64,000 nt of DNA from Botryllus schlosseri (Eukaryota): contig CM119385.1 in assembly GCA_051294905.1 (NCBI GenBank), forward strand, positions 8,556,001-8,620,000, read 5' to 3'. Shown piece after piece: positions 21,309-60,803 of the stretch (the first letter of the stretch is position 1; each line of letters starts with the position of its first letter). The notes under the pieces were generated by a model. That model worked only from the letters and a program-made list of their open reading frames with translations, was not told where the DNA came from and made no database searches. The position numbers and the translations under genes are program-made.

Positions 21309-21600
21309 GTTATTAGCTTCATGATATTGTCCTGAAGTCTACAAATGCATCTGTAAGCCTACGTGGATTGGGTATGTCTCTTTTGCGATGTTTCAGGAAG
21401 GATTTACTTTATAAACCGAATTGGTGAGTTGATGGCCATATCGGAATAATCAACCTTTCGCCAACGCAAGACAGTAACGGCTCCACTGGTCAAGTTACGG
21501 GCCGGGATATATTTTTGATAAGTAGAAGCATCGATAGGCATTTATTCCTAAAATTCAACTCGGTACTATAGGCTATACATAAACAATAACCTATTTTCAG

Positions 21601-21919
21601 ACTGTACAGAAAATATTCCAACACCGCAAGGGCGATCCCGTCACCGAACAGCGCAAATTGCTCGAGGAACGCGAACGCATCGAGAAGCAATTAGCCCAGA
21701 TCGAGGCCGCCCACAAACCACGTCCGATCTTCCGAGCACGGCCGCAATCGGCCGACAATAATGCAGGACGGTCCCAAGAGCAACGCCTGAAAGAACCCAG
21801 ACACGCGGTGAGGCACGTATCGTGGTCGGACGGATACAACTCTACGCGCGCACGCTCTTCTCTGGACTTTGTGGAAAGCAATACAGCGACCATGCCAGCC
21901 AGGGTGAATCTTGCCGCGA
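21601..21919 (+). CDS. Nav N-terminal extension exon ([42 protein letters not shown]...[10 protein letters not shown])
   Basis: Acceptor ctattttcag, donor A|gtaagt at 21920, open across 319 nt and GC-richer than its flanks. The phase 1 end joins exon 31277 (A+AA = Lys). An in-frame TAA lies just upstream in the intron (21580). Confidence 0.8.
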
Positions 21920-24900
21920 GTAAGTGCTTTTACACAATTCACTGCTGCCGTATTAAGTGGGACTGAAGTGACAAACCGTTTTGGGAACTTCAACCAAAAA
22001 AGACGAGATTAACAACATTGAAAGAGCCAGCAGTTAGGCCTACTTCTAAATTTGTTTGCAACTAAACTGAACATTAATGTGTCAGATCTGATCCTGCCTG
22101 GCTACCTATGGTATCCAGGCCTTATACATTTCAGTAATGATATCTTAGACCGCTAGGCGGGGTGCCAAACTCATGTCCTGCAGGGTGTGTTTGAACCATG
22201 CTATTTTATGCGGCCCGAATATGGATACATGAAAAGTGTGCTGCGGCCAAACTGACCACCAGACAGTAGTGTGTCTACATCAATGGTCGGCAACGTTATC
22301 ATGTATAGTGCAGTGTAAAATGGACAAGTGATAAAGTGGCGTGTTACAGGATGCGTTAATGATGACAAACGTTCGTTAAATATCGATCTGGCGATCTAAA
22401 ATCACACGCTACTATTTATCATGGAGAGAATGTTAGGATTTTGATTTGAAGGGGCTTTACCTGCCTCCAACCTTTTTCGTGTCCATGCGCACAGAAGTTT
22501 CTTGTAATCAATCAACCCGTCTCATTAGTTGAACATAGCCAACTGTGATGCTATATATGTGACCTCTTTTGAGAAGTCTACACCTGTCGCGCATGTTCTT
22601 ACCGGATCAAAATTGCTGGATTTGCAGTGATTAATTCCCTCTCAACTATGGCCCAATCAATCTCGAATAACCCGTTCTTATTGATATCTTTTTCATTAGC
22701 TGGTATAGTTCGTTTATTCGTTGGTGCTGTACGTGGACAATGTCCACTGGACATATGTAGTGGACTGCATTGATTACAAATTCAAAGGATTTCTGGTAAT
22801 AATGAACAACGATGAAACATGTTTTTTCATGCGATTCTCATTTGTACCTTCAGTGACCAACCAACCTCAACCAAATTTCTAGAAAAACACATGTAATTTT
22901 TTAATACGGGGTGTGATCAGACCAGTAGACCCTACGCAGAGTCATATCGATCACACCCTGTCCTGCGCCGTTAAGTTTCTTGAGTTATATTTTCATACGT
23001 TAGTGTGGTTTTCTTTTCGGTCGGAACAATCAATAAATACCTTCTCCTCCCATTCGAATGCTAGGCCTTTGGACCAGTGTTTGTCAGTCATGTCAAAGTC
23101 AAGCTACTTCTAAGTACCGGTAGGTGACGCTAGTTAGCTGACTATAGCTCAATTCTGCAGCGCGCTGTCGTTACAAATTTCAGACCAATCCCGCATGATC
23201 ACTGATGACTTGATCAGTCGTGCTTTGACGAAATGAATTGTAATCCTTCAATCCGCAGTGTAATTACTGCCTTTGTATCATCCGAATAATTTGAATTCTA
23301 GTGCTGGCCAGCTTGAGAGTTTTCGAAACGATTCGATGACGCACTTTTGCCCAAAATTAAATTACGGGCCTGTGCGATGAGCCCACTTGTACGTAATTGA
23401 CGTCTCATCATGGCGTTGGGTTGGTATTCGCGTGGGATCATAAGACGCCTTTCCCGGATGCGAATTGAAACTTACCTGGAAGTGATCTTCTTATATTGTG
23501 CCGCGCTGACTACCCGATGCTCTCGGAACAGTTAATCCATTACCTAAACATTAATCTTGCGAGCAATGTCGCTGGCCCACTTGAAAGTACTAGTATCGGC
23601 ATTTGAGAATTGTTGTTACAACTAATGTCGTTTCGAGATGTTTTCACGATTTCACTATTTCCCAGCAAATCCTTTTCGGAATATCGAAAATATCGTAACA
23701 ATAGTGTTCATATTGCCAAATTTATTCCACTCAAAGTTTTTCGACTGACTCTCATCAAGAGCGAATGGCAGTAAATGCTGTTATCCAAATTCCTAATACA
23801 GTATAGGAATAATTTTATCGTTGTGACGTAATAGTTACCATACACCGCAGACCTGACTACGACACATAACTATAGATTACTAACCGTACAGGTTAGTTAT
23901 CTATAGTATAACAGAGACGAATTCGGCTACAAGAAAAGCCGAATAAAAACACAGCAACACTGAAATATTTCCAGAGTATCTATATAGAATAGAGATGTTT
24001 TTTCTGGTTGCAGAGGATTGGCTGTTTCAGCTCTATAATGGTTGATTCAAGAACTTTTGAATGAATGAGATCGACCACAACTAACCATAGGGAAAACGTA
24101 TTGCTACTATAATATTTGGCGCATTCAGGGTGTTTTACGGGTGCAAATATTTATGCGTGACACTATGGGCCAAATTGTTTGTATGTGTATATTTCGGTTG
24201 TATTGTCTTGATCAAGCACAACATACCGCGCTGCCAGATTTTTGATGTAACTTGGACGGTGAGACGCGAACATTGACGTCCCATTATATTCAATTATTTG
24301 ATGTTTCGAGCTTGCCATGTGGACTAACATTGGATGTTAATTGACAACATCAGTCCTATAGTCGATTTCCTGAAGTATTAGCACCGAAAAGGGTGAACAA
24401 TATTATCGGTTTCGAGCTTAATCGTTCAAGAATGACTGTCCCGGATGTAAATGATACCTTGAGTCTGATATATATGACCAATTTACCTACCCTAGTCTTA
24501 TGTGCAATTGTACAGAACATATAAACTCAAGGTCGTCATAAGTTCACATCACATTGGCATACGCCATACTGGTTCGTACGATCAGTTCAGGGACTGTAAA
24601 ATGAATGTGAATGAACTGAACACTTTGAACAGACACTCGAACAGTCGCGAATACATTCTTCACCTCACTCATTATTGGGAAGCTTTCAATTCCACACTTT
24701 TATTATATAGACTTCATGGGACCTCAGTTCACATTCTAGCTTATGTTCAGTCAATGCTCCGTTCAGTTGTGATGATAGTAGACAATATCAATCTTGTATT
24801 TCCAAAATGCTTACATAACATGACATTCCTGATTAGGGTTACGAACGACCCCAATGTCAAGTTGAATAAAATCGTGGAAACGCCCACGTCAGTGCTATCC

Positions 24901-30900: not shown

Positions 30901-33900
30901 CAAGTCCAAGAGCAGAGGATTGAGCCAACGCAAGTCACCACCGAAAAATCGTGTCTCAAGTCAGACATGTTAAAACCCTGGTCTATGGTGCTGAATTCCA
31001 GTCAACGGCTAGTCCCGACTTAAAGTTGAGAAGGTAGGGACCCACAGCATACGCAGCAGGCATCTATTATTAAATATGGACTATGGGTTCAATCACACTG
31101 CGCTGTCACGACAGCAAATCTTAGTGTTAAATTTTAATAGAAATCTCGTCACTCTTTAAGCACGTTATCCGAGGATTGCTTGCCTTTCGTGTGGATTTCG
31201 GAATTGTGTATCCCCATAAGCTTGCATTCGCTATCCAAAATCCGTTCGATTGTCACCAAATTGTCGTCATTTTCAGAAAGGCGAAATGCAATGGGGCAGA
31301 GGCTGCACCGCAAATCGTTGATGCAAGGTCTCCTCAGTGTTACCAACGGTGAAGGGAGAAAACCGGATACGCTGCTGAAAGAGGGCAAGAAATTGCCCAG
31401 TTATCTCACTACTGATAGCGAGGACCACACGTACAGCATACCTGATTGTTGCTACAAGTCTCTGGCGGATCCGGACGAATTTTATGAAAATAAGGTACGG
31501 GCTTCCTTGTGTTATAGGTGACATCATTTTACTTGAGCGGGGTTGTTGATGAAAATATGGGAATTCACGCCGATGACATAAAAAACAAGCTCTAAAATAT
31601 GCACCTGATATATAGAATATGTATTTTCCGCAGTCGACAAAAATGTAGAACGCCGTAATTGAAGGCTCGGCGTAGCCAGGATGAAGTTTGAGCGGGGTGA
31701 CATTTTAACATAATGAGATGACGTCAAGAATATCCACTGGGACTGATGAGAAACGAATAACATATTTTTGAAGTCGCAAATTTACAAAAAGCATATGCCT
31801 TGCCCTTAGCTACGCCGTCGGAAGTACGTCTTTACATAACATATAGTCACAATTAGTAGGAGTTGTGCGAAGCCTGAAAGGTTCAGGTGCGTTTGAACTT
31901 GGACCTTTTTGACAGGTTCTGTCTGAACGCGAACGTGAACCTATGATGCCACGAGACGCCGTATTGCTAATTCCAACCCTACATTCCAGTGGAACGATAT
32001 ATTTAGGCACACGATACAGCGACGACTCAGGCCACATTATGCCCCGATGCTGAAGTATATGCTGACTTGTAAACCGTCGTCAAATGTAGGCCTATCAACT
32101 GTAGTTATCAAATGCTGTATAAATCCAAAAAAAATCAATATATTCTGTCGCTTTGCCAACAATTCCGACGAAGACTTGCAAGGACATATCAGCTTACGCC
32201 CAATCGGTCTAGGCAGACCGGAAAATGTATTCGGTGTCTGACTATTGCTACATTGATACTATGCAGGCAGAGTGTAAAACTGCTTTCTATACTTGCTACC
32301 GATATTTACCGATACCACAAGTTGCGCATTATAGCCAACGCCCCAATCGCACAGATTTGGATTTTCGTTCACAATCGAGATATATAATCAAGATAAATCC
32401 CGTACACCTGCTATATTTTTTACATTAGACAGCGATGTGTTCTTTATCAATTTCATTGATTGGTTGAATAAGCATCACTCGTGATTACCTACATGTGGTG
32501 AATTTCGTTCTTGATGTTATGTGATTGCGGGTCAAGTACAATATATTCACAAATATTTACAAATATTAACAAACTGAAAGCTGAATATTTCAAGCAAACT
32601 TTTCTAACAACGCATGTAAAAGTTTTGAGTTTGGCAAGGTGCATGTTTGTTTAGTGCCATGCATAGAGTTGTCCGAAGTTGAAATGCCAAGAATTTCTAC
32701 CAAAGATGTTATGATGACGCGAAAATTGTAACATGAAACTTTTTTGTATATTTCAATTTTCACTTCATTATAACATCTTTGTATGAAATTTATTGCATTT
32801 CAACTACGAGCAACTCTATGCATAGCGCTGGCAGCAGAAAACAAATCGCCATCAAACGAGCATGCACCTTGACAACCTCAAAAAGTTTACTTGCTTTGTT
32901 ACAAAAGTCTGCACGAAATATCCCGCTTTCTGTTTGTACATGTTTAGTGATTCACTGCTGTAAGCATGACCCTCAATCTCGCAACATCAAGAGCGAAATA
33001 CACTGCATGTGGTCAGCGAATGATGCTTATTCAACCAATCAATGAAATTAATATCGTTGTATGATGTAAAAAATCCAGCAGGCGCACGACTTGACTTCAT
33101 AGGTTTATTGTATCATAAAAACCAAACCCATGCGATTGAGGGGTTGGCCACTGCTGTATGACTTGTTAATGGGGTAATTTCGGTAGCAAGTATAGAAACC
33201 CATTTTACACTCTGGTCAATATCAACGTAACAATAATCAGACGCCGAATACATCGTCCGGTATCACCTAGACCAGGGGTGGGCAAACTACGGCCCGCGGG
33301 CCGCATGCGGCCCGCAACACCGTTATGTGCGGCCCGCGAGAGTCTAAAGAAATTTTTTTTAAATATTGATAAAATACATACTAAATATCGAATTAATGTA
33401 GGGACGTCATTAAAACTTTTTCTTAGTATATTTCCCCATGATAATTTTCAGACAATGGTTCCCAAACTGGGTAACACGCCCCCCCTTGGGGGTATGAAGG
33501 CATCTGAAGGGGGTGCGAAGCTGAGCTCAACTGAAAAAAATTTTCGCGCTCCGCGCGATTGTGATCCACCTCGTAATTATTGCTCTTTATTTAGTCTCAA
33601 TTTCATAGTTAAAAATCTCCCTTCCACAGTCGTAACCTACCATGCCATCAAACATGCTAGCATCTGGTTGCGTTTTTTGATATGACGATAAGGGGGCGCG
33701 AAATGTTTCACCATTATAAGGGGGGGGGCGTGTCTTAAAAAGTTTGAGAACCACTGTTCTAAGGTTAATACTTCCTATATTAATTTTTATGTTTAATTTC
33801 TGGCGCGACAGCCCGATCTCAGGGCCCACGCAGTTTGAAAGGTTTCAACTGCTAAACATCCCCGAAATACTAAACGAGATTGACATTATTCGGATCACGA

Positions 33901-45900: not shown

Positions 45901-48900
45901 ATAGATTCGGTATAGGCAACAGTCCGAAACTTCTACTCTTGACTGAATCATTCACGATTTTTATCGCCGCTCGCGGGCTGTCTGGGTAGCGTCGGGCTCT
46001 ATCGAAAGTGTATTATCGTTGTCTTCTTTATAGAAAGATAGTGAAAAAATGGCAATCTGAGTAAGGTGGTCGAAATCACAGCTGTTTTGCTCGGCGGTTC
46101 ATCATAGTTTGGTTGAGTTAGATTATTTTTAAGTTTTTGGATTGATCAGACTGGAATTAAGATTTCTGAATTTAACACACTATGGCATATTCGAAGGTGC
46201 AGATTGTCTGGTGTAGTCATGTTATTAGTCGGCCTCGGGCCGGGCACTGCAGTAGATCAGTTTAAATATGGCCGCCGCTTACGCACGCCAGCGTTCGTAC
46301 TCAGTCGATGAAATAGGCGCCTCCGCGCACAGGCCCAGTCTAATCGAACAGTGCGCCCAAAAGAGCGCTAGCACGCGCGATAAAATCGCAAGGAGAAAGA
46401 AAATAGAATATGCCTCCCTCCCTTGCCTGTCGCCGACAGACAAGGCGCCGTCCCTCTCGAGCCTGCACCGGGAAGCAAAACAGCGCGCGAAGCACAAGAA
46501 AATGCAGGAGTTGCAGCATCAACACGAACAAGCCAAGCTTGAAAAGAAAATACGGCGCCGCCGGAAATGGTCTTCCGGAGAGATGGCCACTCGCTCCGGA
46601 CACCTCATGAGAAACGTAGCCACTAGGATACGATCGTTCTTCGACACCAAGGTACACGGCGATTATGGCGATCTGAAACCCCAGGCTTTTTCGCGTCGCT
46701 TCGCCGGAACGCGCGCATTTTGTATCGGTAACCGACCTCGTAAATATCGGATAACTGTGTGCACTGTGCATCCTATCTCGTGTGATCAGTTCGTTCGTGT
46801 ATTTAGAATTTTAATCAATTCAAAACACCAACTTGTTTTGCGATAGAATGAAAAGATAACATGGTATCGACACCGCTGATATTAGTCGTTTATATCAAGC
46901 ACTTACACAACTAGAAGATATTCAATTTTTCAATCTAGTTATCCAAGTCTGACCACCTTGGCCGTGAACAGGTAAATAAGAGGCGTGGACAGTCGGCAGT
47001 AATCGTGATCAATCTGCTGTAATCTCTACTACTTATCGATTGGTAATTATTAATTATTAAAACATATAGGGATATTATCATGGATTGGCGCTTTTTGCGC
47101 GTTCATACAGTGCCGTTTGTTATATCGGTACGTCTCCATATTGTATTAATTTTGTTGGATAATGGGGGAACTGTTTTAATCACGTTCTTTTTAGTTTTGA
47201 GCTTTGAGGCGGGTCGGCGGCGAGCGGGATAAAACCGCGGCATCGGGGACAATATAATTAAACAACGTGCATTACCAAAACGGATTTACAAACATGCCGT
47301 AATAAGAGACGGATCAATTTTCTCAGCTGGCTCATGGCCACGATAATCCGTCGGGCAGATTCAGCTATCATCGATACAATGACAGAAATGCGACTGCGCG
47401 ATTCACATCGCATCGCCGCGTAACCATATCAATACAACTGTTCGCGCTGTTATTTTTGACGCACAAAACACATAACCTTCTGTTGGCTATCTTGCGCCTG
47501 TCTTGAATAGACGGGATACATGTGCTTATTCAGAGCCTATTCACTGATGATCACTGTGACACCGTGTCGGAATTGTGCGCGTGATTGGAAGGCGATTTTA
47601 TCATGGGTGATTTTGTTAAATCCTATCAAATTTCGGCTATTGTTGCAACGCGCGACTGTCAACTGTCAGCATATTGGTACCATTCCCGTGCCCTCTATAG
47701 CGGATTCATGCCGCATGTCAAACGGTATGAAGTTGTATGCGGGTGCTTCCGGCAATGTTATGTCCCGGGGCGTGTTGCGCTGTGTTTTGTGTACACATCG
47801 CGTGTTGTTTTATAGAATATGGCGGGGAATCAGTGTATCTTACTCGGATTTGGATTTTGGAAAATGTATTGAAATTGCATTTTAATCTTCGCGTTTTTCG
47901 ACCAATCTTTTTGAATTTATACATCTGTTGTTTATGTAAGAAGCGAGCTTCTGTGATTTGGTGTGATTTACGCGGTTCATGTGCGGTTGGCCAATCGGCC
48001 TTCATCATTGGTTTATTAGCAATTTTTATCAGTTCAATACACCACAAAAAATGCGATACAATGAATAGACAGGAAGATGTCGAAGCGACTTGGATTTGTC
48101 AATGGAATCGGACACCCACCTTGGCCTAGGCGTAGTAAAGAGGAGGCATGCACACTGAATGAAAGTAAAGAATACAGTATAGAAAAAGAAAGCGACAAGA
48201 AATAGGGCGGCATGTCATTGGAAGCCTACGATGTATCAAAGCACTCTGCCTTTTCCAACTGCGGTTTGAAGCGGTATATGGAAATAATTTCGTGGTCTGA
48301 TCGTTATTAACCCCATTTGCCCCCAATCGTGTCTGATGATAGGCTGGATAAAAGGATACGGCATTTTGCATGCAATTTCAAATTTATCAGAATACCGCTT
48401 TTCATAAAGCAATTTGGTCGAACCAAACAATTTCTGAATTTAGAATGCATTCTTAACATCGTTATTGAAACTTAATCGTCGTTTGAACGCTAATGACATT
48501 GCCTTGACAGGCCAGATTTAGCTCTAATATGGCTTGGTAACCATACGGTTGTGTATATAATACACTATAAATAATAATAACACTAATATTATGATATGAT
48601 ATAATAATGATAATAATGACCAAAGATGTATATTCGTCCACAAAGTTATTTGCAATTTATTCAAGTCGTGTTTTTACGTGATCAGTATTGTTACGTAAGT
48701 TGCAGCGTCGATTGTCACCATTATTTTTTCCCACGTTGTCTTTACTGGTTAAATTCCTTCTGGGGTGCGCACCTAGCAGAGCATCGTGATTATGTAACTA
48801 TAACTCAGGTATCTCGTATTGCTGGATCGCACCTTCATCCGCGAAATATTTTTGTTTCAGACTTACATCGTCCTCAACAAGCAAGGCACCACGTTTCGAT

Positions 48901-51900
48901 TCAGCGAGTCCAAATCCCTCTTCCTATTCAACCAGCAAAGCCGCGTCCGACAGTCTTGCATCAACCTCTTCATCCGTCCCATGTTTTCCCACTTCATCAT
49001 GCTCGTGATTTTGGCTAATTGCGCGTGCATGATGTTAGCCGAGCCTCCGGCCTGGATCGAAACGCATCTGGAGTGAGTAATGGCATCGTTAATTTGCGTG
49101 CTTGTAACGGGCCGTATATACTGATGTACGATCTTTGCTCCGAACCTTGTAAGTCGTCAAAAGCCTAATATTAGATATTCTAATTACCTCCACGCAGAGA
49201 TTAAGGCTGTTCCTATTAAACTTTCAACAATAATTGCTACTCATTTCGAGCTTAAATACAGCCTGCGAGTTTACGGCGTGCGTGTAATACACACAGCGCT
49301 AAGTGCTTGCACGTTTTTAAAATTCCCTGCAAGACATGGCTTTTTATGCTTCAGTAGTAGTACAGCAGTATCCGTGGTATTGTGACATTCGCATGTTTCG
49401 TAAAATCGCTTTGTGATTCGCCAATGTTGTTTGTCTGCGTCTGGCTGGTTGAGAACAAATTAAAAAGGACAAGTGACGTAATAGGTGTTGATTGCTACGT
49501 TTCTTTTTGTGTACGTAATTTGTCAGAAGTGTGCTCTGCGTGCAAAGGAGATTCGTGCTACCGAGCGGCTCGTGATATATCATTGTGACGCGTGCTCATA
49601 ATATTAGTGGAAACGACAGATACGTTTCGACAGCTTGATACAGTACTTTTGCGAGTGTGCCGCATGCAATATTGATCGAATGCCATTCGTGTATTCACAA
49701 TACGCAAGCTCACACGAATCTTTATGGGAGAAAGTACTACTCTTTTTTTGACCTGTGAATCACGGGTAACAATGTCAACAACATGTAAGCAACAGGCATA
49801 TTGCATATTTTTATAATTTCATATTTTCTAGGCGTATACCTGTTCTGATGAATATAATTTTTACACAAGCGATTCGGTAATGGACAGAATTTAGTCGGTA
49901 GGTGTTGCCTGAAAAAGGACAATCCACTTGAACTCGATTCAATATACGGCGGAATAATTTGGTTTCCAACATATGTAATCTTCAATTGCACGTTTCCTGA
50001 TGAGGACAATCATTATCGGAATGCACGTGTTGTTGTTTTGATACTCATGGTGTTTTGATGGACTATACTATGGTAGTTTTACACCTTGTCGGTATTTCTT
50101 ATTGTGATTCCTGATCTGCCGACATGTATAACCTACACAAGAGACGCTCTGCTATGTTTTCTTGCATCAATTTTTAGTGGCATTTGTCATTTGCGTAAGT
50201 CGTGACGATGCACCCTGCAGTTTCGAGTATAACCACCCCGAGCGGATATTCTTGACCTATCCTAATATTTTGAAACTATTTACTTGAGTAGTTGTCAAAT
50301 TTTCATTTTATACTCGCACTTGGAATAATTTCGACATTTCCTGCAAATTTCTTGCCATGTGTAATTTCGTAGAAATCTACGTTGCTACTATTGCGTATAC
50401 TTGTGTGTAGGGTTGCATTTAAAACAAAATCTATTTAAAGCAAACATGTTTAAAACAAGGCTCTTGTTTAAAACATGTTTTTTTTTAAGCCATGACGTCA
50501 CGAATTTTCAACTGTGACGTCATGGTGGATTGGCTTTGACAATTGAAAATATAGGGCAAATACAGCTCATATGACGAAATACCTACCTACTATAGCTGTT
50601 TCATCGACAGTTTTGAAGGTTCCAACCATCCCATATCGTAAACGTCTGCTATATCGGGTGGTAATGGTCCGTAGGCTCCTACAACAGTATTTACACAATT
50701 ATGGCATAATTATACAACTTAAAAAAACTCATTTTTATTAAAAAGGGCTTCAATTTAAATGTAAACCTATTACTTGTGTACCAAAAATGACTACCTCTGA
50801 GCATACTATCCGGAAGCTATTCGCTAGTTTGGATAAGTCTTCCTTCAACGCGGTCACAGAATATACCTTGTAAGGCAGATTGCGTCATCGCCATAATCAC
50901 TGCTTGTGACCCAAGAAGTACTTTCGACGTCTTTACTCAAAATGATGCGACGACGCAAGCGCGACGTTAAACTGTGACATTTCGTCGTTGGTGAAGCCTC
51001 GCCAGACTAGTGCTAACAACTGGATTTTCAAGATGCGTAACTAGAACTGGAAACTGCAACTAATTACCTTTAAAGATGCGCAACTAAATAACGAAAGAAC
51101 CTTACTAGTTTTAATTCCGAGGCAACTCCTTCATTTTAATTTTATCGGAATTGCATCGGTTACTGGAGATCGAATAATCGAATAATCGTTTCAAAAGGAC
51201 GGGGTTTCGACCAGATAACCCACCCTCTGGCTAGAACACTGTTCGTACTGATGGCTCTGGGCCATAATCGGGTGCATTAACATCATAAAACAGAGTACCG
51301 GCATCACGATTCATACGAAATAGCGACACTTGTTTTGTAGTTGTTCGGAAACTAATTTTTGCGTAACTAGAACTACTCAATTTAAAGTTTTGCGACTAGA
51401 ATTTAAGCTAGAACTACTACAAAACCAGTAGTTAGATGATGGTAAACTAAAATAACTAGATTGGCTGTTTGGGCAAGTTTGAACCGCGCGCCTTTCGTTT
51501 TTAGATATGTTTTCACCGCGATCTACTGTTTCGAGGCGGCCGTGAAGATTGTCGGGCGCGGGTTCGTCCTGCATCGCTTCGCGTACCTGAGAGATCCCTG
51601 GAACTGGCTGGACTTCCTTGTTATCTTATTCGCGTGAGTGCCTTTATCTCGTTGAGGCGGGTAATTTGCAGTTAGGAGCGGATAGAAATAGTTCTCATTC
51701 AAGTATAGATAGGGGAAAAGGAAAGACTTGGAGTAGTTTTTCAATCAAACTCAGACCTTGGTCTCTAGAAAACGGGGCTCTGAAACATTTTCACTGCGGG
51801 CACCTTCAAGTTTGTGGGTGGTTACGTACACCACCAAAATTTCAGAAGCCGATGGCCAAAGTAAGAAGACAGGTATTCCCTTCGCCGCCCAATCCTGATT

Positions 51901-54900
51901 CAGGGTATCTGACATTTTAAAAGCTACCCGATGTTTAAAAAAGGGTCTCCACTTTGTTGTTTGTGATCCTATCTCGATGTTGTCTATTTCGTGTCCTAAA
52001 ACGCTACCATGGTGACTAAAAAAGGTCATCGGTCATCAAACAAGCTAAATAGTGGCTAGATGAGGTATGCAATTCCACCCACGACGTCATTGCGAAGGAG
52101 TAATGTGGTTTCGCAGTTGATAATGCGTTTCAACATTGCCGTTTCACGGACCCAAAAGAAGTTCGGCTCTGCGAGACGTGCAAATAAGAGTCATGTATGT
52201 ATTAGACCTCCTTATATAGTTGGTGATGCAATATTATAGCATCAGGTAGCATCAGACAGCATGAACAATGGCCTTTACACCAGACCTAACCTGATGAGAA
52301 ATAGATAAACTGTTTTGCTGCACTGTTCCTCAGCAAAAGTAGGATTACCTCCCAAGGGTATAAACGCGGGAGCGAGGTGTTGCGTATGCGTTCCGAAACA
52401 TCCAAGTCGAAGTAGAGTGCCGGTGACTGTTGACAGTGGTCAGGTGCGATAGCATCGGGTGGATTGGAAATATTATGAATTATACATAATCCACTTGAAC
52501 CTGTGCTTTCAGTAAACACAAGTTTCCTGCTTGACGCGCTGGAAGCCGTAATGCATTAGCAGTGAGGTCGCGTTGTCCTTTTTGAGTGGGCGAAATTTAA
52601 TCGCTCGTAAAGATGGCTTAATCCTATCATATGGAAACTCATGCTACTTGCCATTCAATTGTTGATTATGTGTATCGCTGAGCGTAGAACGTCCGAAGTC
52701 CTTTACGTCTTTGTGACTGTTTCCTTTCGGCGGGTACACGCTGAACTGTCTTTTCCGCGATATGGATTGGTGTATGAAGTGGACAGTGATATTAGTCATT
52801 GCGACATCGTGGTGACGCGATAATTTCAGGCCGATTTCCATAAACGATAGCCCTGTGTCGTAAATGGCAATGTAGATTGTACACGATAACCGATTTATTG
52901 ATGAATATTTTAGCTTCTGCAACAACGACATAAAAACGCAAGTCCGCACAATAAAAAAGACACTCCACGTCGCAAGTGTCATAGGTGTCAACATAAAGCA
53001 AGTTCTGGTTTTAGTAGGTGCTAAGCAGGTAAATAGTTGATCAGATCTGATAAGTCTGGTATAGTAATGCCCATTAGGATAGTTACAAAAAAGTATTTCC
53101 AAATCTTTTCCGCTATTCGATGCGAAATTAATAAAAACTTTGCACACCAAATTTGCTCAATTTTAACTGGTAGATGTGAAGCTGCAGGAGTTGAAAAAAT
53201 TATAATTTTTTTCAAATTTGACTGTTAACCTCATGAAATTGTCAAGTTGTCTGAAAAAACGATGGTAAAAATTTTTGCTCACTTCCAACTGGGAGAAGCG
53301 AAGCTATTGCAGTTGAAAATTTTGGATCCGCAAAAATAACATTGACGGTGGGTAATCCCAGAATTAACTATGAAAAACTCAAATAACTTCGCTTCTACGG
53401 GTAGTAATTGATACCCATCATTTTTGAAATTTTCCAAATTTTGGACAATCCTACTGACTATATTTTTGAAGATTGCACCAATTTGTTGTGTCGTGAGTCA
53501 TTCTGCGTTAGTCGGTAAGGTGCGCCCTGCTATTTCGAAATTTGCCAACTTCAATGTACTATTAGAAGTATGCGGCGTCCCTACCTAATTTACTTTTTGC
53601 AAATACGTATTCTTGAGTAGCCTGCATTTAAAGTCATAGTTTTCTACTTCCAAGCCGTTTTTGAAATGTCTTGGAAATTTCTGCGATTACTGCTTTGGCG
53701 GACTCTGCTGTCGACCGATTTTGGTAAGAATGTATTGTTTACATCAGTTTTCTCAGAAATTCCTCCTGATCGATAGGAACTCTTTTTAAAATATCGGTCG
53801 ATGTTTCTACGGTCTTTGATACCGATATTCCCCCTATTTCCAGAATTGGTACTGAGATTATGAAAGCAACCATGCCGGACGACAGCGACCTGGGCCAGTT
53901 CTCCGTGCTGCGGGCCTTCCGAGTACTGCGCGCTTTAAAGACCATGTCCGTCGTGCCAGGTGCGTCACGGTTTTGTCGCCGACCTCTAGATGTAATTAGC
54001 GTGTCTTTGTCCGTTACGTGCCTAACTAGCAATATGGCAGTCCTGTCTTCAAGGGTGTCTTCAAAGATTCTCACCAGCCTAAAAACAAAGGCTTTTTCGT
54101 TGCCGAATTAGTAGCGAAGAGTCCGCTACATTCAATTACGCAACGCGCGCGAACAAAGGCTTGTCTGGCATCGCTCAATTAGCGCTTCTATCCGCGCTGC
54201 GTACGCGAACTGAATCCGAAACCGCCAACATGATATGATAATTAATCGGACGTTGGCTAATGCGATCGGCTCGGAATGCTAATTACAGCTGACCGCGTTT
54301 TTTTCGGAGAAGATTTCAGGCCTTTTCTATTGACTCGGCGATGTGGCCGCTATATGGTGGGTCTCGCGATGCGTAATTACGTACGGTAGGACAATGCGTG
54401 ACTTTGGTGTCGTGTAAGCGGCCGTTTGCGTAATGCTTTAGAAGTCGTTGCGTTGGGGTGTGGAACGACTTTCGCTGATTGGTGTAGGAGTGGGGATGCG
54501 TCGGTGCGACGCTGCCGCCAATTGTTTTGAGGATACGAGCCGAATTTGTAAGTCCTGGCCATTTATGGCCATTTACTATTTATTCTTTGTAGATCTAGAG
54601 CCATAACATTTCCTTTTAGTTTGGCACAAATGACTACTTTAGGAAAATTTGCAAGCATTCGGATTGCGAGCATATTCACCTCCAATCCGAATTTTCACCC
54701 GGCTTTCACACCTATGCGTCTATACACTTTTCTCGATAATTATAAACAATCCAGAGAATTGCAATACTTATGCAATAAACACATACTCTATGAATATGGC
54801 TTATATCGTGTCCGTCATAGGCTGCTGTGACCTGTTTAGACTAATTCACTTACTAGTATTACATCATGAGTCTTAATTTTACGCGACCGCAATACATTGT

Positions 54901-57900
54901 AGATACCTCTGGTAAGCGCTACACGGGGGAATGTTCTTTCTGAATTGAAATCACATTGAGAATCATTACAACTCACTACTGAATATTCCTGTGGTATTTT
55001 CTTCCGCACAATTAGTCCATCTCGCCATCACGAGTGGTTACGAAGTGTGTTTTGGGTCTACAGCGTGGTTGGAAGTTGTGAAGTCGAAATGACAATGAAG
55101 TATGGTATCGGCCATAAATACTGCCTGTGACGGGAATACCAAATTTTCATTCAGACAGTCGCATCGGCCTCAATTATGCAAAACCTTATCCTATTTCTAA
55201 TGAGTACTTCTTCGGGGTGGTCACACTGAAATCGGACGCATAAAATTGATATTCACCCGCGCCGTAGAGCCATTTGCGAGGCCGATGATTGAAGCGTACC
55301 TGAATCGGCGTCTCCGCTCAAATATTTGAATTGTGCATATTTTGACGCCTATAACGCGCCATTTCACGCCGGACGATGTGAAATTTAATAACGCCAACTT
55401 TCCCACCTGGAATATATGAGTATAGCCCTGCTAGGCGAAAAATATATTATTTAACTAAGGTGTCTCCGATCTCTCATCGCCCGCCGCTCGCTACGAAAAA
55501 AACAAGGCTCTGGTGTCGACTGAACTTATTTGCGAAAATGTTGTAGTCACTATTTAAATGCAACTCACTTGTATCGTCTCAAACGACTGTGACGTCGCCT
55601 TGGTGACGGACGTTGAGGGTGCTAAGTGGCCGACACTTTTTGTTGTTTTTACGGACACTATGGATGGCACGTCTCGCTCGGCGGTGGACCGTGTCCCGTG
55701 CGGTTAATGAATATTTTGATATCAACCGTGCAGTTGCTTCTTTGATGCTGGTGCTGTTCGGTTCCGTGTCTATTAGCGTAAAGGGAGGTCGGATTTTCGA
55801 CGGGAAAGAATGCTATGGAATACTATCGGCGTCTCTCCAGCAATTAAAATAGTCATCGTTGCTACTCGGGTACAAAAGCAGACGTAACGTTGTAAATTTC
55901 TACTTAGTACAAGTAGAAATAGCGTCTTCCAAGTTAATAAAGAGCAAATATTCTGAACGGACTGTTGCCTAAACAAAATGTTAAGTAGAAGTAGTTTATT
56001 TACAATCATAAGCAGTTGAGTAAGTAGTCCAAGTAGGCGAGTAGAAGTACACGTTACTGACCACCTCTGGGCTCCGGTCTATGCCCTGTTTGTCCTGACG
56101 CATTTCGGGTGGTCACTATCTCCACTCGATATTTGTTAGGTTGAAAACAAATGCGTTAATGGATCAATTGTAAATGATCACGATCAACACGACGCATTAG
56201 CAGTAAGTGAGAAATTGTGCTGAAACCCGACACCCAAGATATGCTGATAGAGGTTGCGTCAACCTACTTGAGGGAATTTGGTTTTAAACTGCCTTTATTT
56301 GAACAGCCATTGAAGTCAAAGTATTTCGTATTTGCACAATTTAGTCAAGGAAAAGTGACCCCGTAAGGACAGATTCGTAATAGCGAGATCGCCAACGGAA
56401 TCCGGCCAACGGAGCGGCATGTCATGAGTCGGACTTTTGTCGGTCATCAATTGCTTTAGCATTAAATTTGTTTAATGTACCTTCGTCACAGTTTCTGCCA
56501 TACTATAGTAGAGTAGTAGTAGGATAATGCGATATCTAATTAATGAGATTATTCATAAAAAGTTACTCAACTCGTAACTCCTATCTTGTCTGTCGCTTGC
56601 GTAGGCGCGCTACAAGCTTCATACATTTCGATCACATGCTAGGATTAATATATTGAACAATTATATAATTCGTATAATCCTTAATGCGTCTGCTCGGTTA
56701 TACCGGTCAACGGGTGCATCTAAATTGCAATCTTTTTATTCACAAGTATCCTATGGTCTCTCTCTATATATAAATTTCCAGTGTGTAACCGATGCGATGA
56801 AAATACAATTTAAATGGTTCTCGCATATTAATTCATCAATATTGATGCCGGTGCCGCTCACCGATTCTATATACGTACCGGAGTCGGTCTCGTAGCTCGG
56901 GATCAAGTTTTCCGTCTCGTTCACGGTCGCGGAGTTTTAATTATTCATCAATTCACGCAAAGTTGGCATCCCCGTCTTGATAAGAATTCTATATCGGAGC
57001 GCAAATCAAATTTTGCCCGGATACTGGAAATAGAGCCTCGTCACGGTATAATTTCGGCATTACGGCGTCTAGTATAGTCTCAAGTGTGGATTGTGTAGTC
57101 GTGTGGAGTATACGGTCATTTAGGTTGTGCATGTGATGCTCTGCTGTATAGACCCGGATCAGAACTTGATGTGGTGGACTGTTTCAGTGACTAGGGGAGC
57201 ATTGGGGTTGTTCGTTCCGGTCTTTGCCTTTCATTATGGCTCACTTGAATCGAGCGTTGAACTTTACACGAAACTAACAGTAAATTTAAGCTATCGCAGA
57301 GAGTCACGAAATGTTCCCCATAAACACGCAGTTTCATCATGATTTGGACAGGAGATATAGTTCGTACATTTCAACTGTGCGCTATTCCGCCCCAAGTAGA
57401 GTAGTTAGTGAGATTGTCAGGAGTTTTACCACGTGCCGCGATGAACAACGACTGGTGAGGGGTGAACAATGAGCATGCGTCACTTCATAACCCTAAAATG
57501 GGTCTCATGCGTAATCGTCGCATGCTCACGAATCCGTTAGAGAACCGGTAACAAACTGCTCCCCGTTACCAGCACCGTACACAAAGTCATAACCCATATT
57601 CCTTCTGCCAGGTCTCCGCGGGATCGTCAAAGCCCTGCTGCGGTCCATACGAGCCCTGCAAGATGCCGTGGCTCTTACCATGTTCTGCGTGTCCGTCTTC
57701 GCACTCATCGGCTACCAGCTCTTCCACGGCACCCTGCGTCACAAATGCGTGCTCAAACCAGGCTACATCGCCGACGGTCCGGACGCGTTGTACCTAGCCG
57801 ATTGGGACGCGTCCAACACCACCTACCTAGCGGGCCCCGCCTTATTTCAATTCGACCCGGGCCGGACTACGCCGCCTTCCGTCGAATGGCATAATTTCAC

Positions 57901-60803
57901 CAAAAATCGCGAAATTGACAAATATCTGCCCATGTCGCTAACGCCGCTTTTTTCATATCACATTAACGAGACTTGCTACGATTGCTACCCCGAATGGACC
58001 CCTTTTTATAACACTACGTGGACCGAACACGACACTAATTTAACGAAAAATATGTTCGCCACAATCCACCACCAGCTATTGAACGCTTCGTCCAGTTTTC
58101 GCCGTGATACGCAGTCAAAGTCGGCTTCGTGCGTAGATATTCTAAATGAATGCCTAGTGTCTAGCGATATGCGACTGTACACAAACAGCAGTAATTCCAG
58201 CTTAGTGCAGGAGATGCTACGATCCCAAGCCGACCCATACGGCCATTTTTACGAGACCGGTTGTGAATTTCTAAGCGGTAATTCCACGCGGAATTTAACA
58301 TCGAGCGATTCGATATGCAATGTCTCAGTCACTGCGTACGCGGGAAATATTACCTGCATGTATGAAATCCTAGGCTTCAACCGGACTAACGACACGCTTT
58401 TGAGGTTTCATGAATGCTTCGACAACAACACGTGGATTAAAACACTCGCTTTCGGCAAGGAACGCGTGCAACGGTATGAAACACGTAAAACGGCGATATT
58501 TTACCGCTTGCATCCTGTCCCCGGCGGTTCTGCCGGAATGAGGGTGGACGAAGCGTTTCGCGGCGGAAAGTCGAACTTGATATTTGAGGAGTATGAGCGC
58601 GAGGCTATGACTAAGGCGGAACTGACGGATTGGAATTGCACTGACGAGCATTACCTCATGAGAGACGTGGACCGGGGGATGTATTTTTATCCGAACTCGT
58701 CGAACAGACCCACCGACGAGCCGCGCTACTGCAAGCTGGCGGACACGTATGTATTACTCTGTTTATAGCAGCAGTGGTTCCCAACCTTTTTCCACCCGCG
58801 TACCATTTCGAGGTTTTACGCAGTGCTCGCGTACCACCTACATAAGATACGCACGCCGAAGGCGGTAAAAAATGTTTCTACCGTGTTGAGTTGCTGAATA
58901 CAGGGAAACAGAAGATAGCTGCCCAACGTGCCCATTTTAAGGCGCAGTATATGATTTCTGTAGTGGATCCATTTGGAATTCTTATGGTCAAATGTATCCA
59001 AACGAAATTTGATTAGGTAAGAATCCCAATGCTTTACGACTATAGATTTCTTCCCCGTAGGTCGTCATTGGCAGGGTTGCCCCTACCCACGACGACGACC
59101 TTACCACGAAGACGAAGGCTTCAAAAAACTAAAAATCAACCCCACCTGAACTAATAACTCCCTTCGGTCCAAAAAACAGAATCCACTCCTGTGCCACCTG
59201 GAAGACCTTCGCGTACCACTACGCGCACCACAGGTTGGGAACCACTGGTTTATAGATCATCATGTCTTTCGTGCTCACTGCTCAGCCTAGCATCGGTCGG
59301 ACTAAAAATGGTTTTATGTTGAAACGGGTTTAAGGTTATGAATGACGGGTTTATTTTTTTCTGTTTTTGTCGATATCCTGGTTAACTATACAAATCAAGT
59401 TAATTGTTCGGGATGGAAATAAAATATCGTCGATGATTGAACGGACGCGGCGAGTTACCATGGCCCGATAGGAGGATGTATCGCGTTCGATTTGCCTAAG
59501 TGTACATTTGACACTTTTCACTGTATTGCTGCGATTGGGTACTTGACCCGTCGAATCATTTTCCAGGTTCACATTTACACATGAATACTAGAGATACTAA
59601 TTTCAATGAATATAGACATATGTGATAATTTAATAATCAGCATTCAACTTCTCCTGCAGCCAATTTGCTCTTGTTATCATTAAGACATTCGTTGACTATA
59701 TCAAATTTCCTATCTAATGAATTATATATCTTGAAATATCCCTGATATTACAGATTTTTAGCGATGCCGATATCTGGCAATATGGGTGTGCCGATGTATC
59801 ATTCTCGCATATAGAGATAGATAACAATTTCCAATAATATAAATAATACACTTTCGTTCGAACTACGAGCAATATTTCTGTATATGAATTCACTAGAATG
59901 TGCGGGTAGCGCGAAGGCACTCATAGTTCCCATTCGCCGGACCGGAATATTTACATTGCTGACATTCATGCATCGTGGGAACGTCCGGGGTTGTTGCGGC
60001 GTTGTGACGCGACACGCATCGGCCGACTCATATAGTTTGCACGAATTTTTAAATCGCATCCCCGGCGAACCGTGACGTTGTTGTCATATTTAGTATAGAA
60101 AGCGTCTCGGACATGGAGCGTTGTTTATAACGCTTTGCCGTTCGTTCGATTGTTGGAAAACACAAGGGCTGTACTGTTGTCATGTTATGCGGTGACATAT
60201 AGCGTGTAGGTTGCGTCCTATTGACAAACTGTTGCATTTTACGCACTGATAATAATAATTGGGACTGGGCACCACGATTCGAGTATCAATTGTAGCCGTT
60301 CGTCGAGTCGATTATCGAGAGTTGATTTTTCAGGTAACGAAAATAGTCGTCATCCTGCTACTAGTTACTCCGTCAACTAAAACAAAACATAATTTTTATA
60401 CTACGTTCCCGCTGGCGAGCAGTAATACGTCGTTGGTCGTACGTCAGCATCCGAAACCAGCTGTGCAAGGTTACGCATGTTCGACATTTCTCGGAGTTAG
60501 TGATCAACCCTCGGCATTGTCATAAAGCGCTATTCAAATTATTTTTGATGACGTGTACCTAGCGTTCTTTTACTTGAGATTTGAATCATTCATTCGCACA
60601 TTAGACGATTTACGAATCTGTATTTCGAATGTCTAAACACCACCTTGATCTCATCCAGCTCTGTTTGCGGCGCTTCCCACGAATGTCTGGAAGCCGGCGG
60701 CAACCCGGACTCCGGTTATACCAACTTCGATTCCTTCTTCTGGGCGTTTCTCACCTCGTTCCGCCTGATTAACCAAGATGCCTGGAGTCGCCTCTATTAT
60801 TTG
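21601..60803 (+). CDS. Voltage-gated sodium channel alpha subunit (Nav/SCN family), 5' part: N-terminus to DI pore loop; multi-exon gene continuing beyond the window
   Basis: Seven phase-compatible exons with canonical AG/GT ends join into one ORF containing Nav hallmarks: [17 protein letters not shown]|[78 protein letters not shown]. The specific orthologue cannot be assigned from the window, so no gene symbol is given. Confidence 0.97.
25000..25262 (-). mobile_element. Related SINE subfamily, degenerate; 3' boundary approximate
   Basis: Minus strand has A-box TAGCGTAGCGG, B-box-like GATCGAATCC and the shared core GGAGGTTATTCTAGGCTCCTC...AAAAAGCCCAG; the 3' part differs from the other copies. 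Confidence 0.6.
25780..26812. mobile_element. Decayed MITE (AAGTAGAAGTA repeats, GTTACTGACC end) hosting the 25919-26500 insertion
   Basis: The right end gtagaagtacttcgttactgacc matches the end of the copy at 55850-56069; the left boundary is approximate. Confidence 0.45.
25919..26500. mobile_element. hAT MITE (TAGGGTTGCATTTAAAAC termini)
   Basis: Long terminal repeats TAGGGTTGCATTTAAAACAAA / TTTGTTTTAAATGCAACCA; perfect 8-bp TSD ggtgggat. Confidence 0.9.
26823..27224. mobile_element. Degenerate relative of the 17361-18305 MITE
   Basis: cagcgttggg start, tgacttgact / gagtca arrays, ttgacaccaac end. Confidence 0.55.
28881..29101. repeat. Hairpin or small palindromic MITE, about 90-bp arms and 40-nt loop
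   Basis: tattcatattgaaa...gagaattg.aaaga..attgta matches the reverse complement of the right arm at about 90% by eye. Confidence 0.85.
30596..30713 (+). mobile_element. Short dispersed repeat (TAGGGTTGGAATTAGCAAT family), copy A
   Basis: Aligns with 34651-34804 (same strand) and 31854-32001 (opposite strand); lacks one internal block. Confidence 0.8.
30821..30980. mobile_element. Small decayed MITE with caagtc/gagtca arrays
   Basis: Repeated tcaagtc/cgagtca motifs ending in aaaaccctg. Confidence 0.45.
31277..31494 (+). CDS. Nav N-terminal domain exon ([12 protein letters not shown]...[10 protein letters not shown]...[11 protein letters not shown])
   Basis: Acceptor cattttcag, donor AAG|gtacgg. 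LKEGKKLP and [11 protein letters not shown] match Nav LEAGKxLP and LEDLDPYYxNK. The phase 0 end joins TYIVLNK, the same intron position as in vertebrate SCN genes. Confidence 0.92.
31854..32001 (-). mobile_element. TAGGGTTGGAATTAGCAAT family, copy B (inverted)
   Basis: Its reverse complement aligns along the full length of copy C. Confidence 0.8.
32612..32894. mobile_element. Palindromic MITE with long imperfect terminal repeats
   Basis: Left arm gcatgtaaaagttttgag...tgcatagagttg...gttgaaatgc pairs with right arm gcatttcaact...caactctatgca...ctcaaaaagtttacttgc. Confidence 0.75.
33273..34451. mobile_element. hAT (Buster-like) MITE with a nested MITE at 33453-33756
   Basis: Terminal repeats CAGGGGTGGGCAAAC / GTTTGCCCACCCCTG; TSD acctagac / acctatac (7/8, central TA); gcggcccgc subterminal repeats. 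The inner element has caatggttcccaaac / gtttgagaaccactg ends. Confidence 0.9.
34651..34804 (+). mobile_element. TAGGGTTGGAATTAGCAAT family, copy C
   Basis: Aligns with copies A and B. Confidence 0.8.
37255..37629. repeat. Imperfect palindrome, about 150-bp arms and 75-nt spacer (foldback MITE-like)
   Basis: ttgccaccac.gcagggt...ggcactt.ctggt.caaaa...tattccaat...acaccaat..tatggagatatat.ccagg pairs with the reverse complement of 37478-37629. Confidence 0.8.
39627..40015. mobile_element. hAT (Buster-like) MITE
   Basis: Terminal repeats CAGTGGTTCCCAAC / GTTGGGAACCACTG; TSD gtcaaaat / atctaaat (6/8). Confidence 0.85.
41432..43069. mobile_element. 1638-bp foldback-type element with hAT-like ends, about 780-bp inverted arms and 80-bp spacer
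   Basis: TAGGGTTGTCCATAATTTGG termini; perfect 8-bp TSD ttcaccat (41424-41431 and 43070-43077); the arms align from the termini to about 42213 / 42291. Confidence 0.95.
44014..44515. mobile_element. hAT (Buster-like) MITE
   Basis: Terminal repeats CAGTGGTTATCA / TGATAACCACTG; TSD ggttagag / ggttggag (7/8). Confidence 0.85.
46268..46651 (+). CDS. Alternative first coding exon giving a different 128-aa Nav N-terminus ([15 protein letters not shown]...RIRSFFDTK)
   Basis: ATG at 46268, 128 open codons with GC-rich composition like the other exons, donor AAG|gtacac at 46652 in phase 0, matching the exon 48861 acceptor. No Nav homology within the exon. Confidence 0.75.
48861..49072 (+). CDS. Nav exon: end of N-terminal domain and DI-S1 ([23 protein letters not shown]...[27 protein letters not shown])
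   Basis: Acceptor tttttgtttcag, donor GA|gtgagt, 212 nt, phase 0 to 2. Clear similarity to Nav TFIVLNKGKxIFRFSAT...ILTNCVFM. Confidence 0.97.
50408..50750. mobile_element. Truncated copy of the 25919-26500 MITE
   Basis: The left terminal repeat TAGGGTTGCATTTAAAACAAAA and internal sequence (catgacgtca...gtgacgtca.ggtggatt...gacaattgaaaatataggg) are colinear; the right repeat is missing. Confidence 0.8.
51505..51633 (+). CDS. Nav exon: DI-S2/S3 ([43 protein letters not shown])
   Basis: Acceptor tttcgtttttag, donor GC|gtgagt, phase 2 to 2. Its 129 nt equal the length of the vertebrate SCN exon. Not in the ORF track because it has no start codon. Confidence 0.98.
53844..53959 (+). CDS. Nav exon: DI S3-S4 linker and S4 voltage sensor ([39 protein letters not shown])
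   Basis: Acceptor cctatttccag, donor CCAG|gtgcgt, 116 nt, phase 2 to 1. The R..R..R..K gating-charge pattern is intact. Confidence 0.97.
55850..56069. mobile_element. Partial MITE end (GTAGAAGTA repeats, CGTTACTGACCACCTCTG terminus)
   Basis: Terminus shared with the element ending at 26812. Confidence 0.5.
57612..58746 (+). CDS. Nav exon: DI S4-S5 linker, S5 and a very long extracellular S5-pore loop
   Basis: Acceptor ttccttctgccag, donor AC|gtatgt at 58747, 1135 nt open in frame, phase 1 to 2. Starts [12 protein letters not shown]...[18 protein letters not shown] and ends PRYCKLADT. Confidence 0.96.
58772..59247. mobile_element. hAT (Buster-like) MITE just downstream of the giant exon donor
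   Basis: Terminal repeats CAGTGGTTCCCAACCT / AGGTTGGGAACCACTG; TSD gtttatag at 58761-58768 and 59248-59255, with an extra cag at 58769-58771. Confidence 0.9.
60659..60803 (+). CDS. Nav exon: DI pore loop ([48 protein letters not shown])
   Basis: Acceptor tcatccag, donor TTG|gtgaga, 145 nt, phase 2 to 0. Colinear with Nav [47 protein letters not shown]. Confidence 0.97.

Follow-up and report, generated by a model that had tools for sequence, protein, structure and literature searches.

A D/E/K/E selectivity filter and an altered outer pore ring in a putative Nav1b sodium channel gene of Botryllus schlosseri

We analyzed a 64,000-nucleotide (nt) stretch of the Botryllus schlosseri genome (G000:C15:8556001-8620000, hereafter the window), which holds the first part of a voltage-gated sodium channel (Nav) gene with an unusual pore motif in domain I (DI). 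Few parts of animal sodium channels are as strongly conserved or as thoroughly studied as the inner ring of four filter residues, Asp-Glu-Lys-Ala (DEKA, contributed by domains DI to DIV), and the outer carboxylate ring. At window positions 60771-60791 of the plus strand, the codons AAC CAA GAT GCC TGG AGT CGC translate to NQDAWSR. An initial annotation, made from the letters of the window, had described this motif as a non-canonical DI pore that keeps the Asp of the filter and departs from the usual residues around it. The motif is real: it stands in the translation, in an exon with GT-AG borders, and in identical form in two spliced contigs derived from RNA. The gene stretches from near window position 21600 to some 48 kb beyond the window's end (G000:C15 ~8577600-8667800), and the filter residues of the other three domains were retrieved from the DNA beyond it.

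The exon encoding NQDAWSR (window 60659-60803) is bordered by ag and gt, with ...cag before it and gtgaga after it. Public sequencing runs were aligned to window 57500-61000, and the exact limits of the exon were set by RNA-derived contigs from run X7 (study P4, 2020) and run X11 (study P6, 2015), which belong to independent studies. In contigs of both runs the 1912-nt intron 58747-60658 (GT..AG) is spliced out (58746>60659), there are 0 differences from the window over 60659-60803, and the sequence continues past 60803 into ACCCTACACACAATCGGAGAG, which is TLHTIGE of the sixth transmembrane segment (S6) of DI in the next exon, 9 kb downstream. A guide-based splice search made without RNA evidence gave the same junctions, 58746>60659 and 60803>next exon, and a DNA-like contig of another sample (run X5) also spans the exon. 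The DI pore exon is expressed and forms part of spliced mRNA in the samples of both studies. Because the spliced X7 and X11 contigs are identical over the exon, the codons GCC (Ala), AGT (Ser) and CGC (Arg), which had been singled out for a check against sequencing errors, are not such errors. Styela clava reads AQDAWSR at the same place, and nothing was found that would support an error of assembly or sequencing in these codons, which has a practically negligible probability. Mutually exclusive alternative DI pore exons were also considered and ruled out, there being a single copy of the exon on the contig.

The DI pore exon matched Pfam Ion_trans (E=9.5e-7), and its best matches among solved structures were Nav1.5 chains, to which it aligned without gaps (NQDAWSRLY and TQDCWERLY). 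By this alignment, the Asp contributes the DI residue of the inner (DEKA) ring, the Ala stands at the Tyr/Phe/Cys site governing sensitivity to tetrodotoxin (TTX), and the outer-ring Glu (E403 in Nav1.4, E387 in Nav1.2) is replaced by Ser, in agreement with the initial assignment of these residues. It had further been proposed that the local charge is reversed at DI. A change in charge stands because the Glu is lost, but not because of the Arg that follows, which is ordinary in this position (TQDCWERLY in Nav1.5, TQDSWER in other Nav1 rows). A search of the 48-residue exon against a set of 5.8 billion proteins gave no match, which is uninformative since the search sees only proteins of about 26-84 residues.

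We fetched 160 kb downstream to locate the remaining domains, and modeled the gene with the Styela clava orthologue as a guide and a search for frame-keeping GT/AG sites with fixed anchors. The core gene model has 27 exons, 27/27 of them open and with GT-AG borders, and encodes four domains of six transmembrane segments each, with full Arg/Lys ladders in the fourth segment (S4) of DI-DIV (for example, LRIIRLFRVTRILRLIK). The DII pore loop, FRIQCGEWIENM, has the core RIQCGEW with a filter Glu (CGEW) and EWIE at the outer ring, and the DIII pore loop, MQVATFKGWLEIM, has a filter Lys (TFKGW) and GWLE at the outer ring. The DIV pore loop, FQISTSEGWNTFIE, is interrupted between FQ and ISTSEGW by an intron with clean cag/gta borders; its filter residue is Glu (STSEGW) and its outer-ring residue is Asn (GWN). 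The inner ring is therefore D/E/K/E, differing from the canonical D/E/K/A by the DIV Glu, and the outer ring is S/E/E/N (DI WSR, DII EWIE, DIII GWLE, DIV GWN) in place of the canonical E/E/(D or M)/D. With Glu, Lys and Glu retrieved in DII, DIII and DIV, the filter is neither DEKA nor DEEA, the two forms named in the initial annotation.

Outside the pore, the III-IV linker is GGEDGVFLTDEQKRYYNAIKR, with the core GEDGVFLTDEQ, in which VFL replaces the inactivation triad IFM. The central Phe of the triad (GEDGVFLTDEQKR) is retained and the flanking changes are conservative; the lamprey sequence is IFL, and Nav2 rows have MFL or VFL. The ankyrin-binding motif [VA]P[ILV]A..[ED][SD][DE] was absent from the open reading frames (ORFs) of the II-III linker, searched in every plus frame from DII to DIII.

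A HMMER search with the DIII pore/S6 exon gave Ciona savignyi H2ZPU3, a D/E/T/E channel, as the best full-length match. Its motifs are ALDSWSR, CGEW, TFTGW, STSEGW and GEDGVFLTDEQ, and a search with the H2ZPU3 protein recovered orthologues in C. intestinalis, Phallusia mammillata, Clavelina lepadiformis and Styela clava. In a maximum-likelihood (ML) tree of 29 proteins and 1586 columns, the Botryllus gene paired with Styela with a support of 99, at 76% identity over 1315 columns (77-94% in the core exons). The pair grouped with Ciona, Phallusia and Clavelina, again with a support of 99 (six rows, two Ciona species), and this Nav1b group lay inside the chordate Nav1 clade together with vertebrates and Ciona savignyi Nav1a (support 100), with the Nav2 rows outside. 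The proposed comparison with the Nav1 and Nav2 clades thus places the gene in chordate Nav1, beside CiNav1b. On the evidence of sequence, we identify it as the orthologue of Ciona CiNav1b, a tunicate-specific Nav1 paralogue. An identity as Nav2 (D/E/E/A) was ruled out by the DIII Lys and by the position in Nav1, and an identity as Cav was ruled out as well, the Cav loci lying elsewhere and reading TMEGWTD.

We found three Nav-type loci in the Botryllus genome, namely Nav1b on contig C15, Nav1a on C13 and Nav2 on C10. The Nav1a locus (G000:C13:5783623-5797985; L019, L025, L026, L029) reads AQDYWEN in DI and VATYKGWMD in DIII, with Tyr for Phe before the Lys, and has the IFM linker GGQDIFMTEEQRK. 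Its DIV reads SGWAELL, in which the outer-ring Asp is replaced by Ala (GWAELL), as in the TTX-insensitive channels TuNa1 and CiNav1a. Nav2 is a separate locus (TLDFWEN, TFEGW). A fourth Nav locus, the counterpart of CiNav1c, was not found with three different queries, and as the search scores the best candidates only, this absence is provisional.

The pore residues of the Nav1b orthologues are compared in Table 1. The DI outer-ring Glu was present in 130/130 Nav1/Nav2 rows outside the Nav1b clade and in 0/16 rows inside it, counting all sequences fetched, many of which are isoforms, so that about six lineages are independent. Likewise, all 16 Nav1b rows read WSR, WGR or WNR, and WE was found in each of the 130 other Nav rows. 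We propose that loss of the DI outer-ring Glu followed by Arg may serve as a signature of the Nav1b clade. The retrieved orthologues have in common D-[A/S]-W-[S/G/N]-R in DI, and Glu at the DIV filter in all of those with DIV data (STSEGW or STSEAW). The pore is therefore not a peculiarity of one gene: its DI state and DIV Glu are conserved across the tunicate Nav1b paralogue clade, of which CiNav1b was already published.

Table 1. Pore residues of Botryllus Nav1b and its relatives
Source	DI motif	DIII filter residue	DIV motif
Botryllus gene	NQDAWSR	Lys	SEGWN
Styela	AQDAWSR	Lys	SEGWN
Ciona	ALDSWSR	Thr	SEGWD
Phallusia	ALDAWGR	Asn	SEGWD
Clavelina	TLDAWNR	Asn	SEAWD
P0035 (metagenome-derived relative)	SLDAWSR	Met	not covered

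The DIII filter residue, normally the invariant Lys of DEKA, varies within the clade (K/T/N/M), while the filter residues of DI, DII and DIV stay D, E and E. Thr at DIII is not clade-wide, and the published D/E/T/E describes Ciona and not all Nav1b channels. Lys also occurs at DIII in Nav1a and in the outlying relative P0030, and a single nucleotide change can turn a Lys codon into one for Thr, Asn or Met. On these grounds, the ancestral DIII state of the Nav1b clade is likely Lys, which Botryllus retains. The P0035 protein comes from an intron-free 6.9-kb scaffold labeled as metagenome (L030; ENA ERZ23498693, scaffold_8295), which is Nav1b-like (SLDAWSR, DIII Met). A second ORF of this scaffold contains VFLTQEQ and the first to fifth transmembrane segments (S1-S5) of DIV, placing the frame break within the III-IV linker. 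The scaffold probably represents a transcript from a marine tunicate relative.

The conservation of these residues bears on the possibility that the gene is a decaying or functionless duplicate, whose odd residues reflect relaxed constraint. Such an origin could be suspected from the long stem branch of Nav1b in the ML tree (0.4 + 0.4 + 0.31) and from the disappearance of canonical motifs (DEKA, IFM and the ankyrin motif). However, every core exon has canonical splice sites and an open frame, spliced transcripts of the gene occur in two studies, the protein keeps the identity to Styela given above, and the unusual residues are themselves kept in Styela, Ciona, Phallusia and Clavelina. We regard decay as very improbable.

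The substituted positions are known from studies of toxin binding. In Nav1.4, E403Q raises the half-maximal inhibitory concentration (IC50) of TTX 4521-fold, equivalent to 5.2 kcal/mol, and costs 6.2 kcal/mol for saxitoxin (STX); D1532N raises it 43-fold for TTX, with a cost of 6.2 kcal/mol for STX, and Y401C costs 4.8 kcal/mol (PMC2852835). In natural channels, Y401A confers more than 600-fold and Y401S about 7000-fold resistance (PMC8476164). Botryllus Nav1b combines the equivalents of Y401A and of a neutral E403 (Glu403 to Ser) with the exact D1532N, in addition to Glu for the small DIV Ala. Because Tyr401 to Ala, Glu403 to Ser and Asp1532 to Asn, each of which confers resistance, are combined, the outer vestibule is predicted to be unable to bind TTX or STX. 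By analogy with these mutants, insensitivity of Botryllus Nav1b to both toxins is very probable.

Insensitivity to TTX has long been known for ascidian Na+ channels and currents, and is the norm (PMC8192821). CiNav1a is insensitive to 10 uM TTX, for which the authors credit the DIV outer-ring change from GWD to GWA (PMC8192821). These reports raise the possibility that the DI and DIV changes of the Nav1b vestibule represent resistance of a filter feeder to dietary guanidinium toxins, and not a change in permeation. The substituted positions confer resistance in newts, pufferfish and snakes (PMC8476164) and in mutagenesis (PMC2852835), the TTX insensitivity of ascidians has been suggested to be adaptive for filter feeders (PMC8192821), and Nav1a of the same genome also carries the DIV outer-ring change. 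On the other hand, one substitution is already enough, as CiNav1a demonstrates (PMC8192821), and the three or four stacked changes of Nav1b, together with its new filter Glu and the variable DIII residue, exceed the need. Toxin resistance also leaves the filter change from Ala to Glu, VFL and the loss of the ankyrin motif unexplained. We therefore consider toxin pressure, as opposed to a new permeation role, a possible but rather unlikely driver of the vestibule changes.

With respect to permeation, an altered conductance or selectivity had been predicted from the DI motif. The Nav1.4 mutants E403C, Y401C and A1529C have reversal potentials near wild type, and K1237C loses selectivity and admits Ca2+ (PMC2219431). 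D1532C raises the permeability to K+ and NH4+, with a permeability ratio of K+ to Na+ (PK/PNa) of 0.20 compared to 0.05 in wild type (PMC2219431), and E387Q changes the peak current only modestly (PMC2852835). By analogy, the DI changes alone are not expected to alter selectivity, which takes away part of the original prediction. Any change in selectivity would more likely stem from DIV, where the filter Ala is replaced by Glu and the outer-ring Asp by Asn. Our literature search turned up no measurements for a DIV filter Glu combined with a DIII Lys, and none for the single mutant A1714E in openly available papers. The double mutant in which Lys and Ala are both changed to Glu (DEEE; K1422E + A1714E) is Ca2+-selective, but Botryllus Nav1b retains the Lys.

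We propose that Nav1b would be a voltage-gated, probably inactivating cation channel, since the intact S4 ladders and the retained Phe of VFL suggest voltage gating with inactivation. As the DIII Lys is retained, Na+ would most likely still be preferred, and Ca2+ excluded as a permeant ion. The filter Glu and the DIV outer-ring Asn would probably raise K+ and NH4+ permeability somewhat, alter divalent block and lower the unitary conductance.

A different possibility is that the channel has given up Na+-selective spiking and turned into a cation channel of poor selectivity or under Ca2+ modulation, or into a sensor or leak channel like NALCN or Nax, with a vestibule remodelled for another role in permeation and toxin insensitivity as a by-product. 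The extra acidic residue of the filter (D/E/K/E) and an outer ring lacking two of four carboxylates would fit such a role, as would the effect of D1532C on K+ and NH4+ permeability. In addition, sister lineages replace the DIII Lys by Thr, Asn or Met, and such replacement in Nav1.4 abolishes Na+ selectivity (PMC2219431). With no ankyrin motif and an altered IFM, Nav1b is also not built like the axonal spike channel Nav1a of the same genome. However, the DIII Lys, the chief determinant of selectivity for Na+ over K+ and Ca2+, is retained in Botryllus and Styela. Four full S4 ladders and the inactivation Phe are kept as well, unlike in NALCN and Nax. A loss of Na+ selectivity in Botryllus is accordingly doubtful in our judgment.

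Taken together, the sequence comparisons make it probable that NQDAWSR belongs to the DI pore loop of a tunicate Nav1b gene that is intact and transcribed, and that this gene encodes a Na+-preferring channel insensitive to TTX and STX. Several points weigh against this proposal. No raw RNA read from run X24 covered the exons, which may be taken as low or tissue-restricted expression of the gene, yet only about 6% of X24 was read and the blank says little on expression level. The exons of DII-DIV (G000:C15 8640258-8667825) rest on GT-AG splice logic and on near-identity to the Styela protein, by which they are predicted. The predictions for toxins, selectivity and inactivation would all carry over from mammalian mutants in a different background, and A1529C tells little about A1529E. 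The spread of residues at DIII (K/T/N/M) is a hint that selection may not be maintaining strict Na+ selectivity.

The features of the gene are listed in Table 2. In the giant-loop exon (57606-58746), the X7 and X11 contigs differed from the window at 19 positions, compared to 0 in the 145-nt pore exon, suggesting a polymorphic ectodomain beside an invariant pore loop. Within the intron after the giant exon, word depth over window 58770-59250 climbed in X5 from about 80 up to 180,000, and by similar factors in X7 and X11. Short contigs and loose ends are numerous here, and the segment is an interspersed repeat of high copy number or a mobile-element fragment. About 10 kb past the last matched exon, at G000:C15 ~8677440-8677740 (region 121440-121740), there is a short-period repeat of coding appearance that is open in all three plus frames, reading CRQCHQ..., PMSPMS... 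and VANVTNV..., and which resembles a microsatellite array.

Table 2. Features of the putative Nav1b gene (window positions unless a contig is named)
Feature	Position	Strand	Evidence
N-terminal cytoplasmic exon	21610..21924, approximate limits	+	tblastn only, 40% identity to Styela orthologue residues 49-156
N-terminal cytoplasmic exon	31258..31488, approximate limits	+	tblastn only, 58% identity to Styela orthologue residues 149-225
End of N-terminal cytoplasmic part and DI S1 exon	48861..49072 (start is that of the tblastn match, not a splice-site call)	+	72% identity to Styela orthologue residues 228-306; donor at 49072
DI S2-S3 exon	51505..51633	+	Ion_trans E=8.4e-12; tblastn to Styela; splice search
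DI S3-S4 loop and S4 exon	53844..53959	+	Ion_trans match; tblastn to Styela; splice search
DI S4-S5 linker, S5 and very long glycosylated extracellular S5-P loop exon	57612..58746	+	X7/X11 contigs over 57606-58746; tblastn to Styela orthologue; splice search
DI pore loop exon	60659..60803	+	X7/X11 contigs, splice search, Pfam Ion_trans
NQDAWSR: DI filter Asp, Ala (TTX site), Trp, Ser (outer ring), Arg	60771..60791	+	translation, Nav1.5 alignment, two spliced RNA contigs
DIII pore exon	G000:C15:8657058-8657246, beyond the window		

The novelty of these findings is limited by the fact that the Nav1b paralogue and its altered filter in Ciona are already published (PMC8192821). Kawai et al. (J Biol Chem, 2021) described CiNav1b as one of three Ciona Nav1 paralogues, functionally uncharacterised, with a D/E/T/E filter, no ankyrin motif (as in CiNav1c) and a weakly conserved inactivation latch (PMC8192821). 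Our search of the literature found neither a natural nor an engineered DEKE filter. It also found no description of the D/E/K/E of Botryllus and Styela, of the absence of the DI outer-ring Glu throughout the clade together with Ala or Ser at the TTX site, or of the K/T/N/M series at DIII, and a 2018 review of eukaryotic Nav channels makes no mention of DEKE or of the tunicate Nav1b pore. The claim made here is modest, as the Ciona orthologue and its filter are published, TTX insensitivity is usual in ascidians, and the functional statements are predictions.

The gene highlights an expressed chordate Nav1 paralogue, conserved among ascidians, that departs from both rings, with the Lys kept, a Glu added and two outer carboxylates dropped. 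The Nav1b channels offer a ready natural set for testing the joint effects of inner- and outer-ring charge on selectivity, conductance, divalent block and guanidinium-toxin binding, and they bear on the role of non-canonical Nav1 paralogues in the closest invertebrate relatives of vertebrates. A bolder and unlikely interpretation is that the clade represents a natural allelic filter series, D/E/K/E in stolidobranch-type species and D/E/T/E, D/E/N/E or D/E/M/E elsewhere, in which the rest of the vestibule is fixed and remodelled (DI Glu lost, DIV Glu gained). In such a series, DEKE would be the ancestral filter of a channel that left the spike role and, arising independently from NALCN and Nax, became a voltage-gated cation channel with weak selectivity or Ca2+ modulation. 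If true, this would be a channel type new to physiology.

Regarding the proposed Na+-preferring, toxin-insensitive Nav1b channel, its nearest relative is Styela clava P0164 (2993 residues), which has the same D/E/K/E filter, DIV GWN and linker, and AQDAWSR in DI. P0164 differs by Ala in place of the Botryllus Asn two residues before the filter Asp, and by LFYL in place of LYYL. It is automatically annotated as 'sodium channel protein type 3 subunit alpha-like', after vertebrate Nav1.3, and the annotation is silent on the pore. CiNav1b (H2ZPU3_CIOSA, F7AUQ0_CIOIN) resembles the Botryllus channel in DI, where ALDSWSR and NQDAWSR share Asp, a small residue, Trp, Ser and Arg, as well as in the DII core RIQCGEW, the DIV STSEGW, the linker core GEDGVFLTDEQ and the lack of an ankyrin motif. 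The two differ in that CiNav1b has Thr at DIII where Botryllus has Lys, keeps the DIV outer-ring Asp (GWD) where Botryllus has Asn (GWN), and has Ser at the TTX site where Botryllus has Ala.

The canonical ascidian neuronal channels CiNav1a and TuNa1 share with Botryllus Nav1b the chordate Nav1 clade and an outer-vestibule change associated with TTX insensitivity, but Nav1a keeps DEKA, the DI Tyr and Glu (AQDYWEN), IFM and the ankyrin motif. Vertebrate TTX-resistant channels are similar in having a non-aromatic DI site, which is Cys in Nav1.5 and Ala, Cys or Ser in newts and pufferfish (PMC8476164), and Nav1.5 also has Arg directly after the outer-ring position. They differ in keeping the DI outer-ring Glu and DEKA, and their resistance is due to one to three substitutions with the inner ring untouched. 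The natural residues of Botryllus mimic the rat Nav1.2 and Nav1.4 pore mutants with E387Q/E403 neutralisation and Y401A, and match D1532N exactly, whereas the mutants are single changes in a DEKA background. NALCN, another four-domain channel, has the filter EEKE, with Lys in DIII and Glu in DIV, and Nax has lost the DIII Lys, as have the Phallusia and Clavelina orthologues of Nav1b. Unlike NALCN and Nax, Botryllus Nav1b has Asp and not Glu in DI, has complete S4 ladders, and takes its position in the tree within Nav1.

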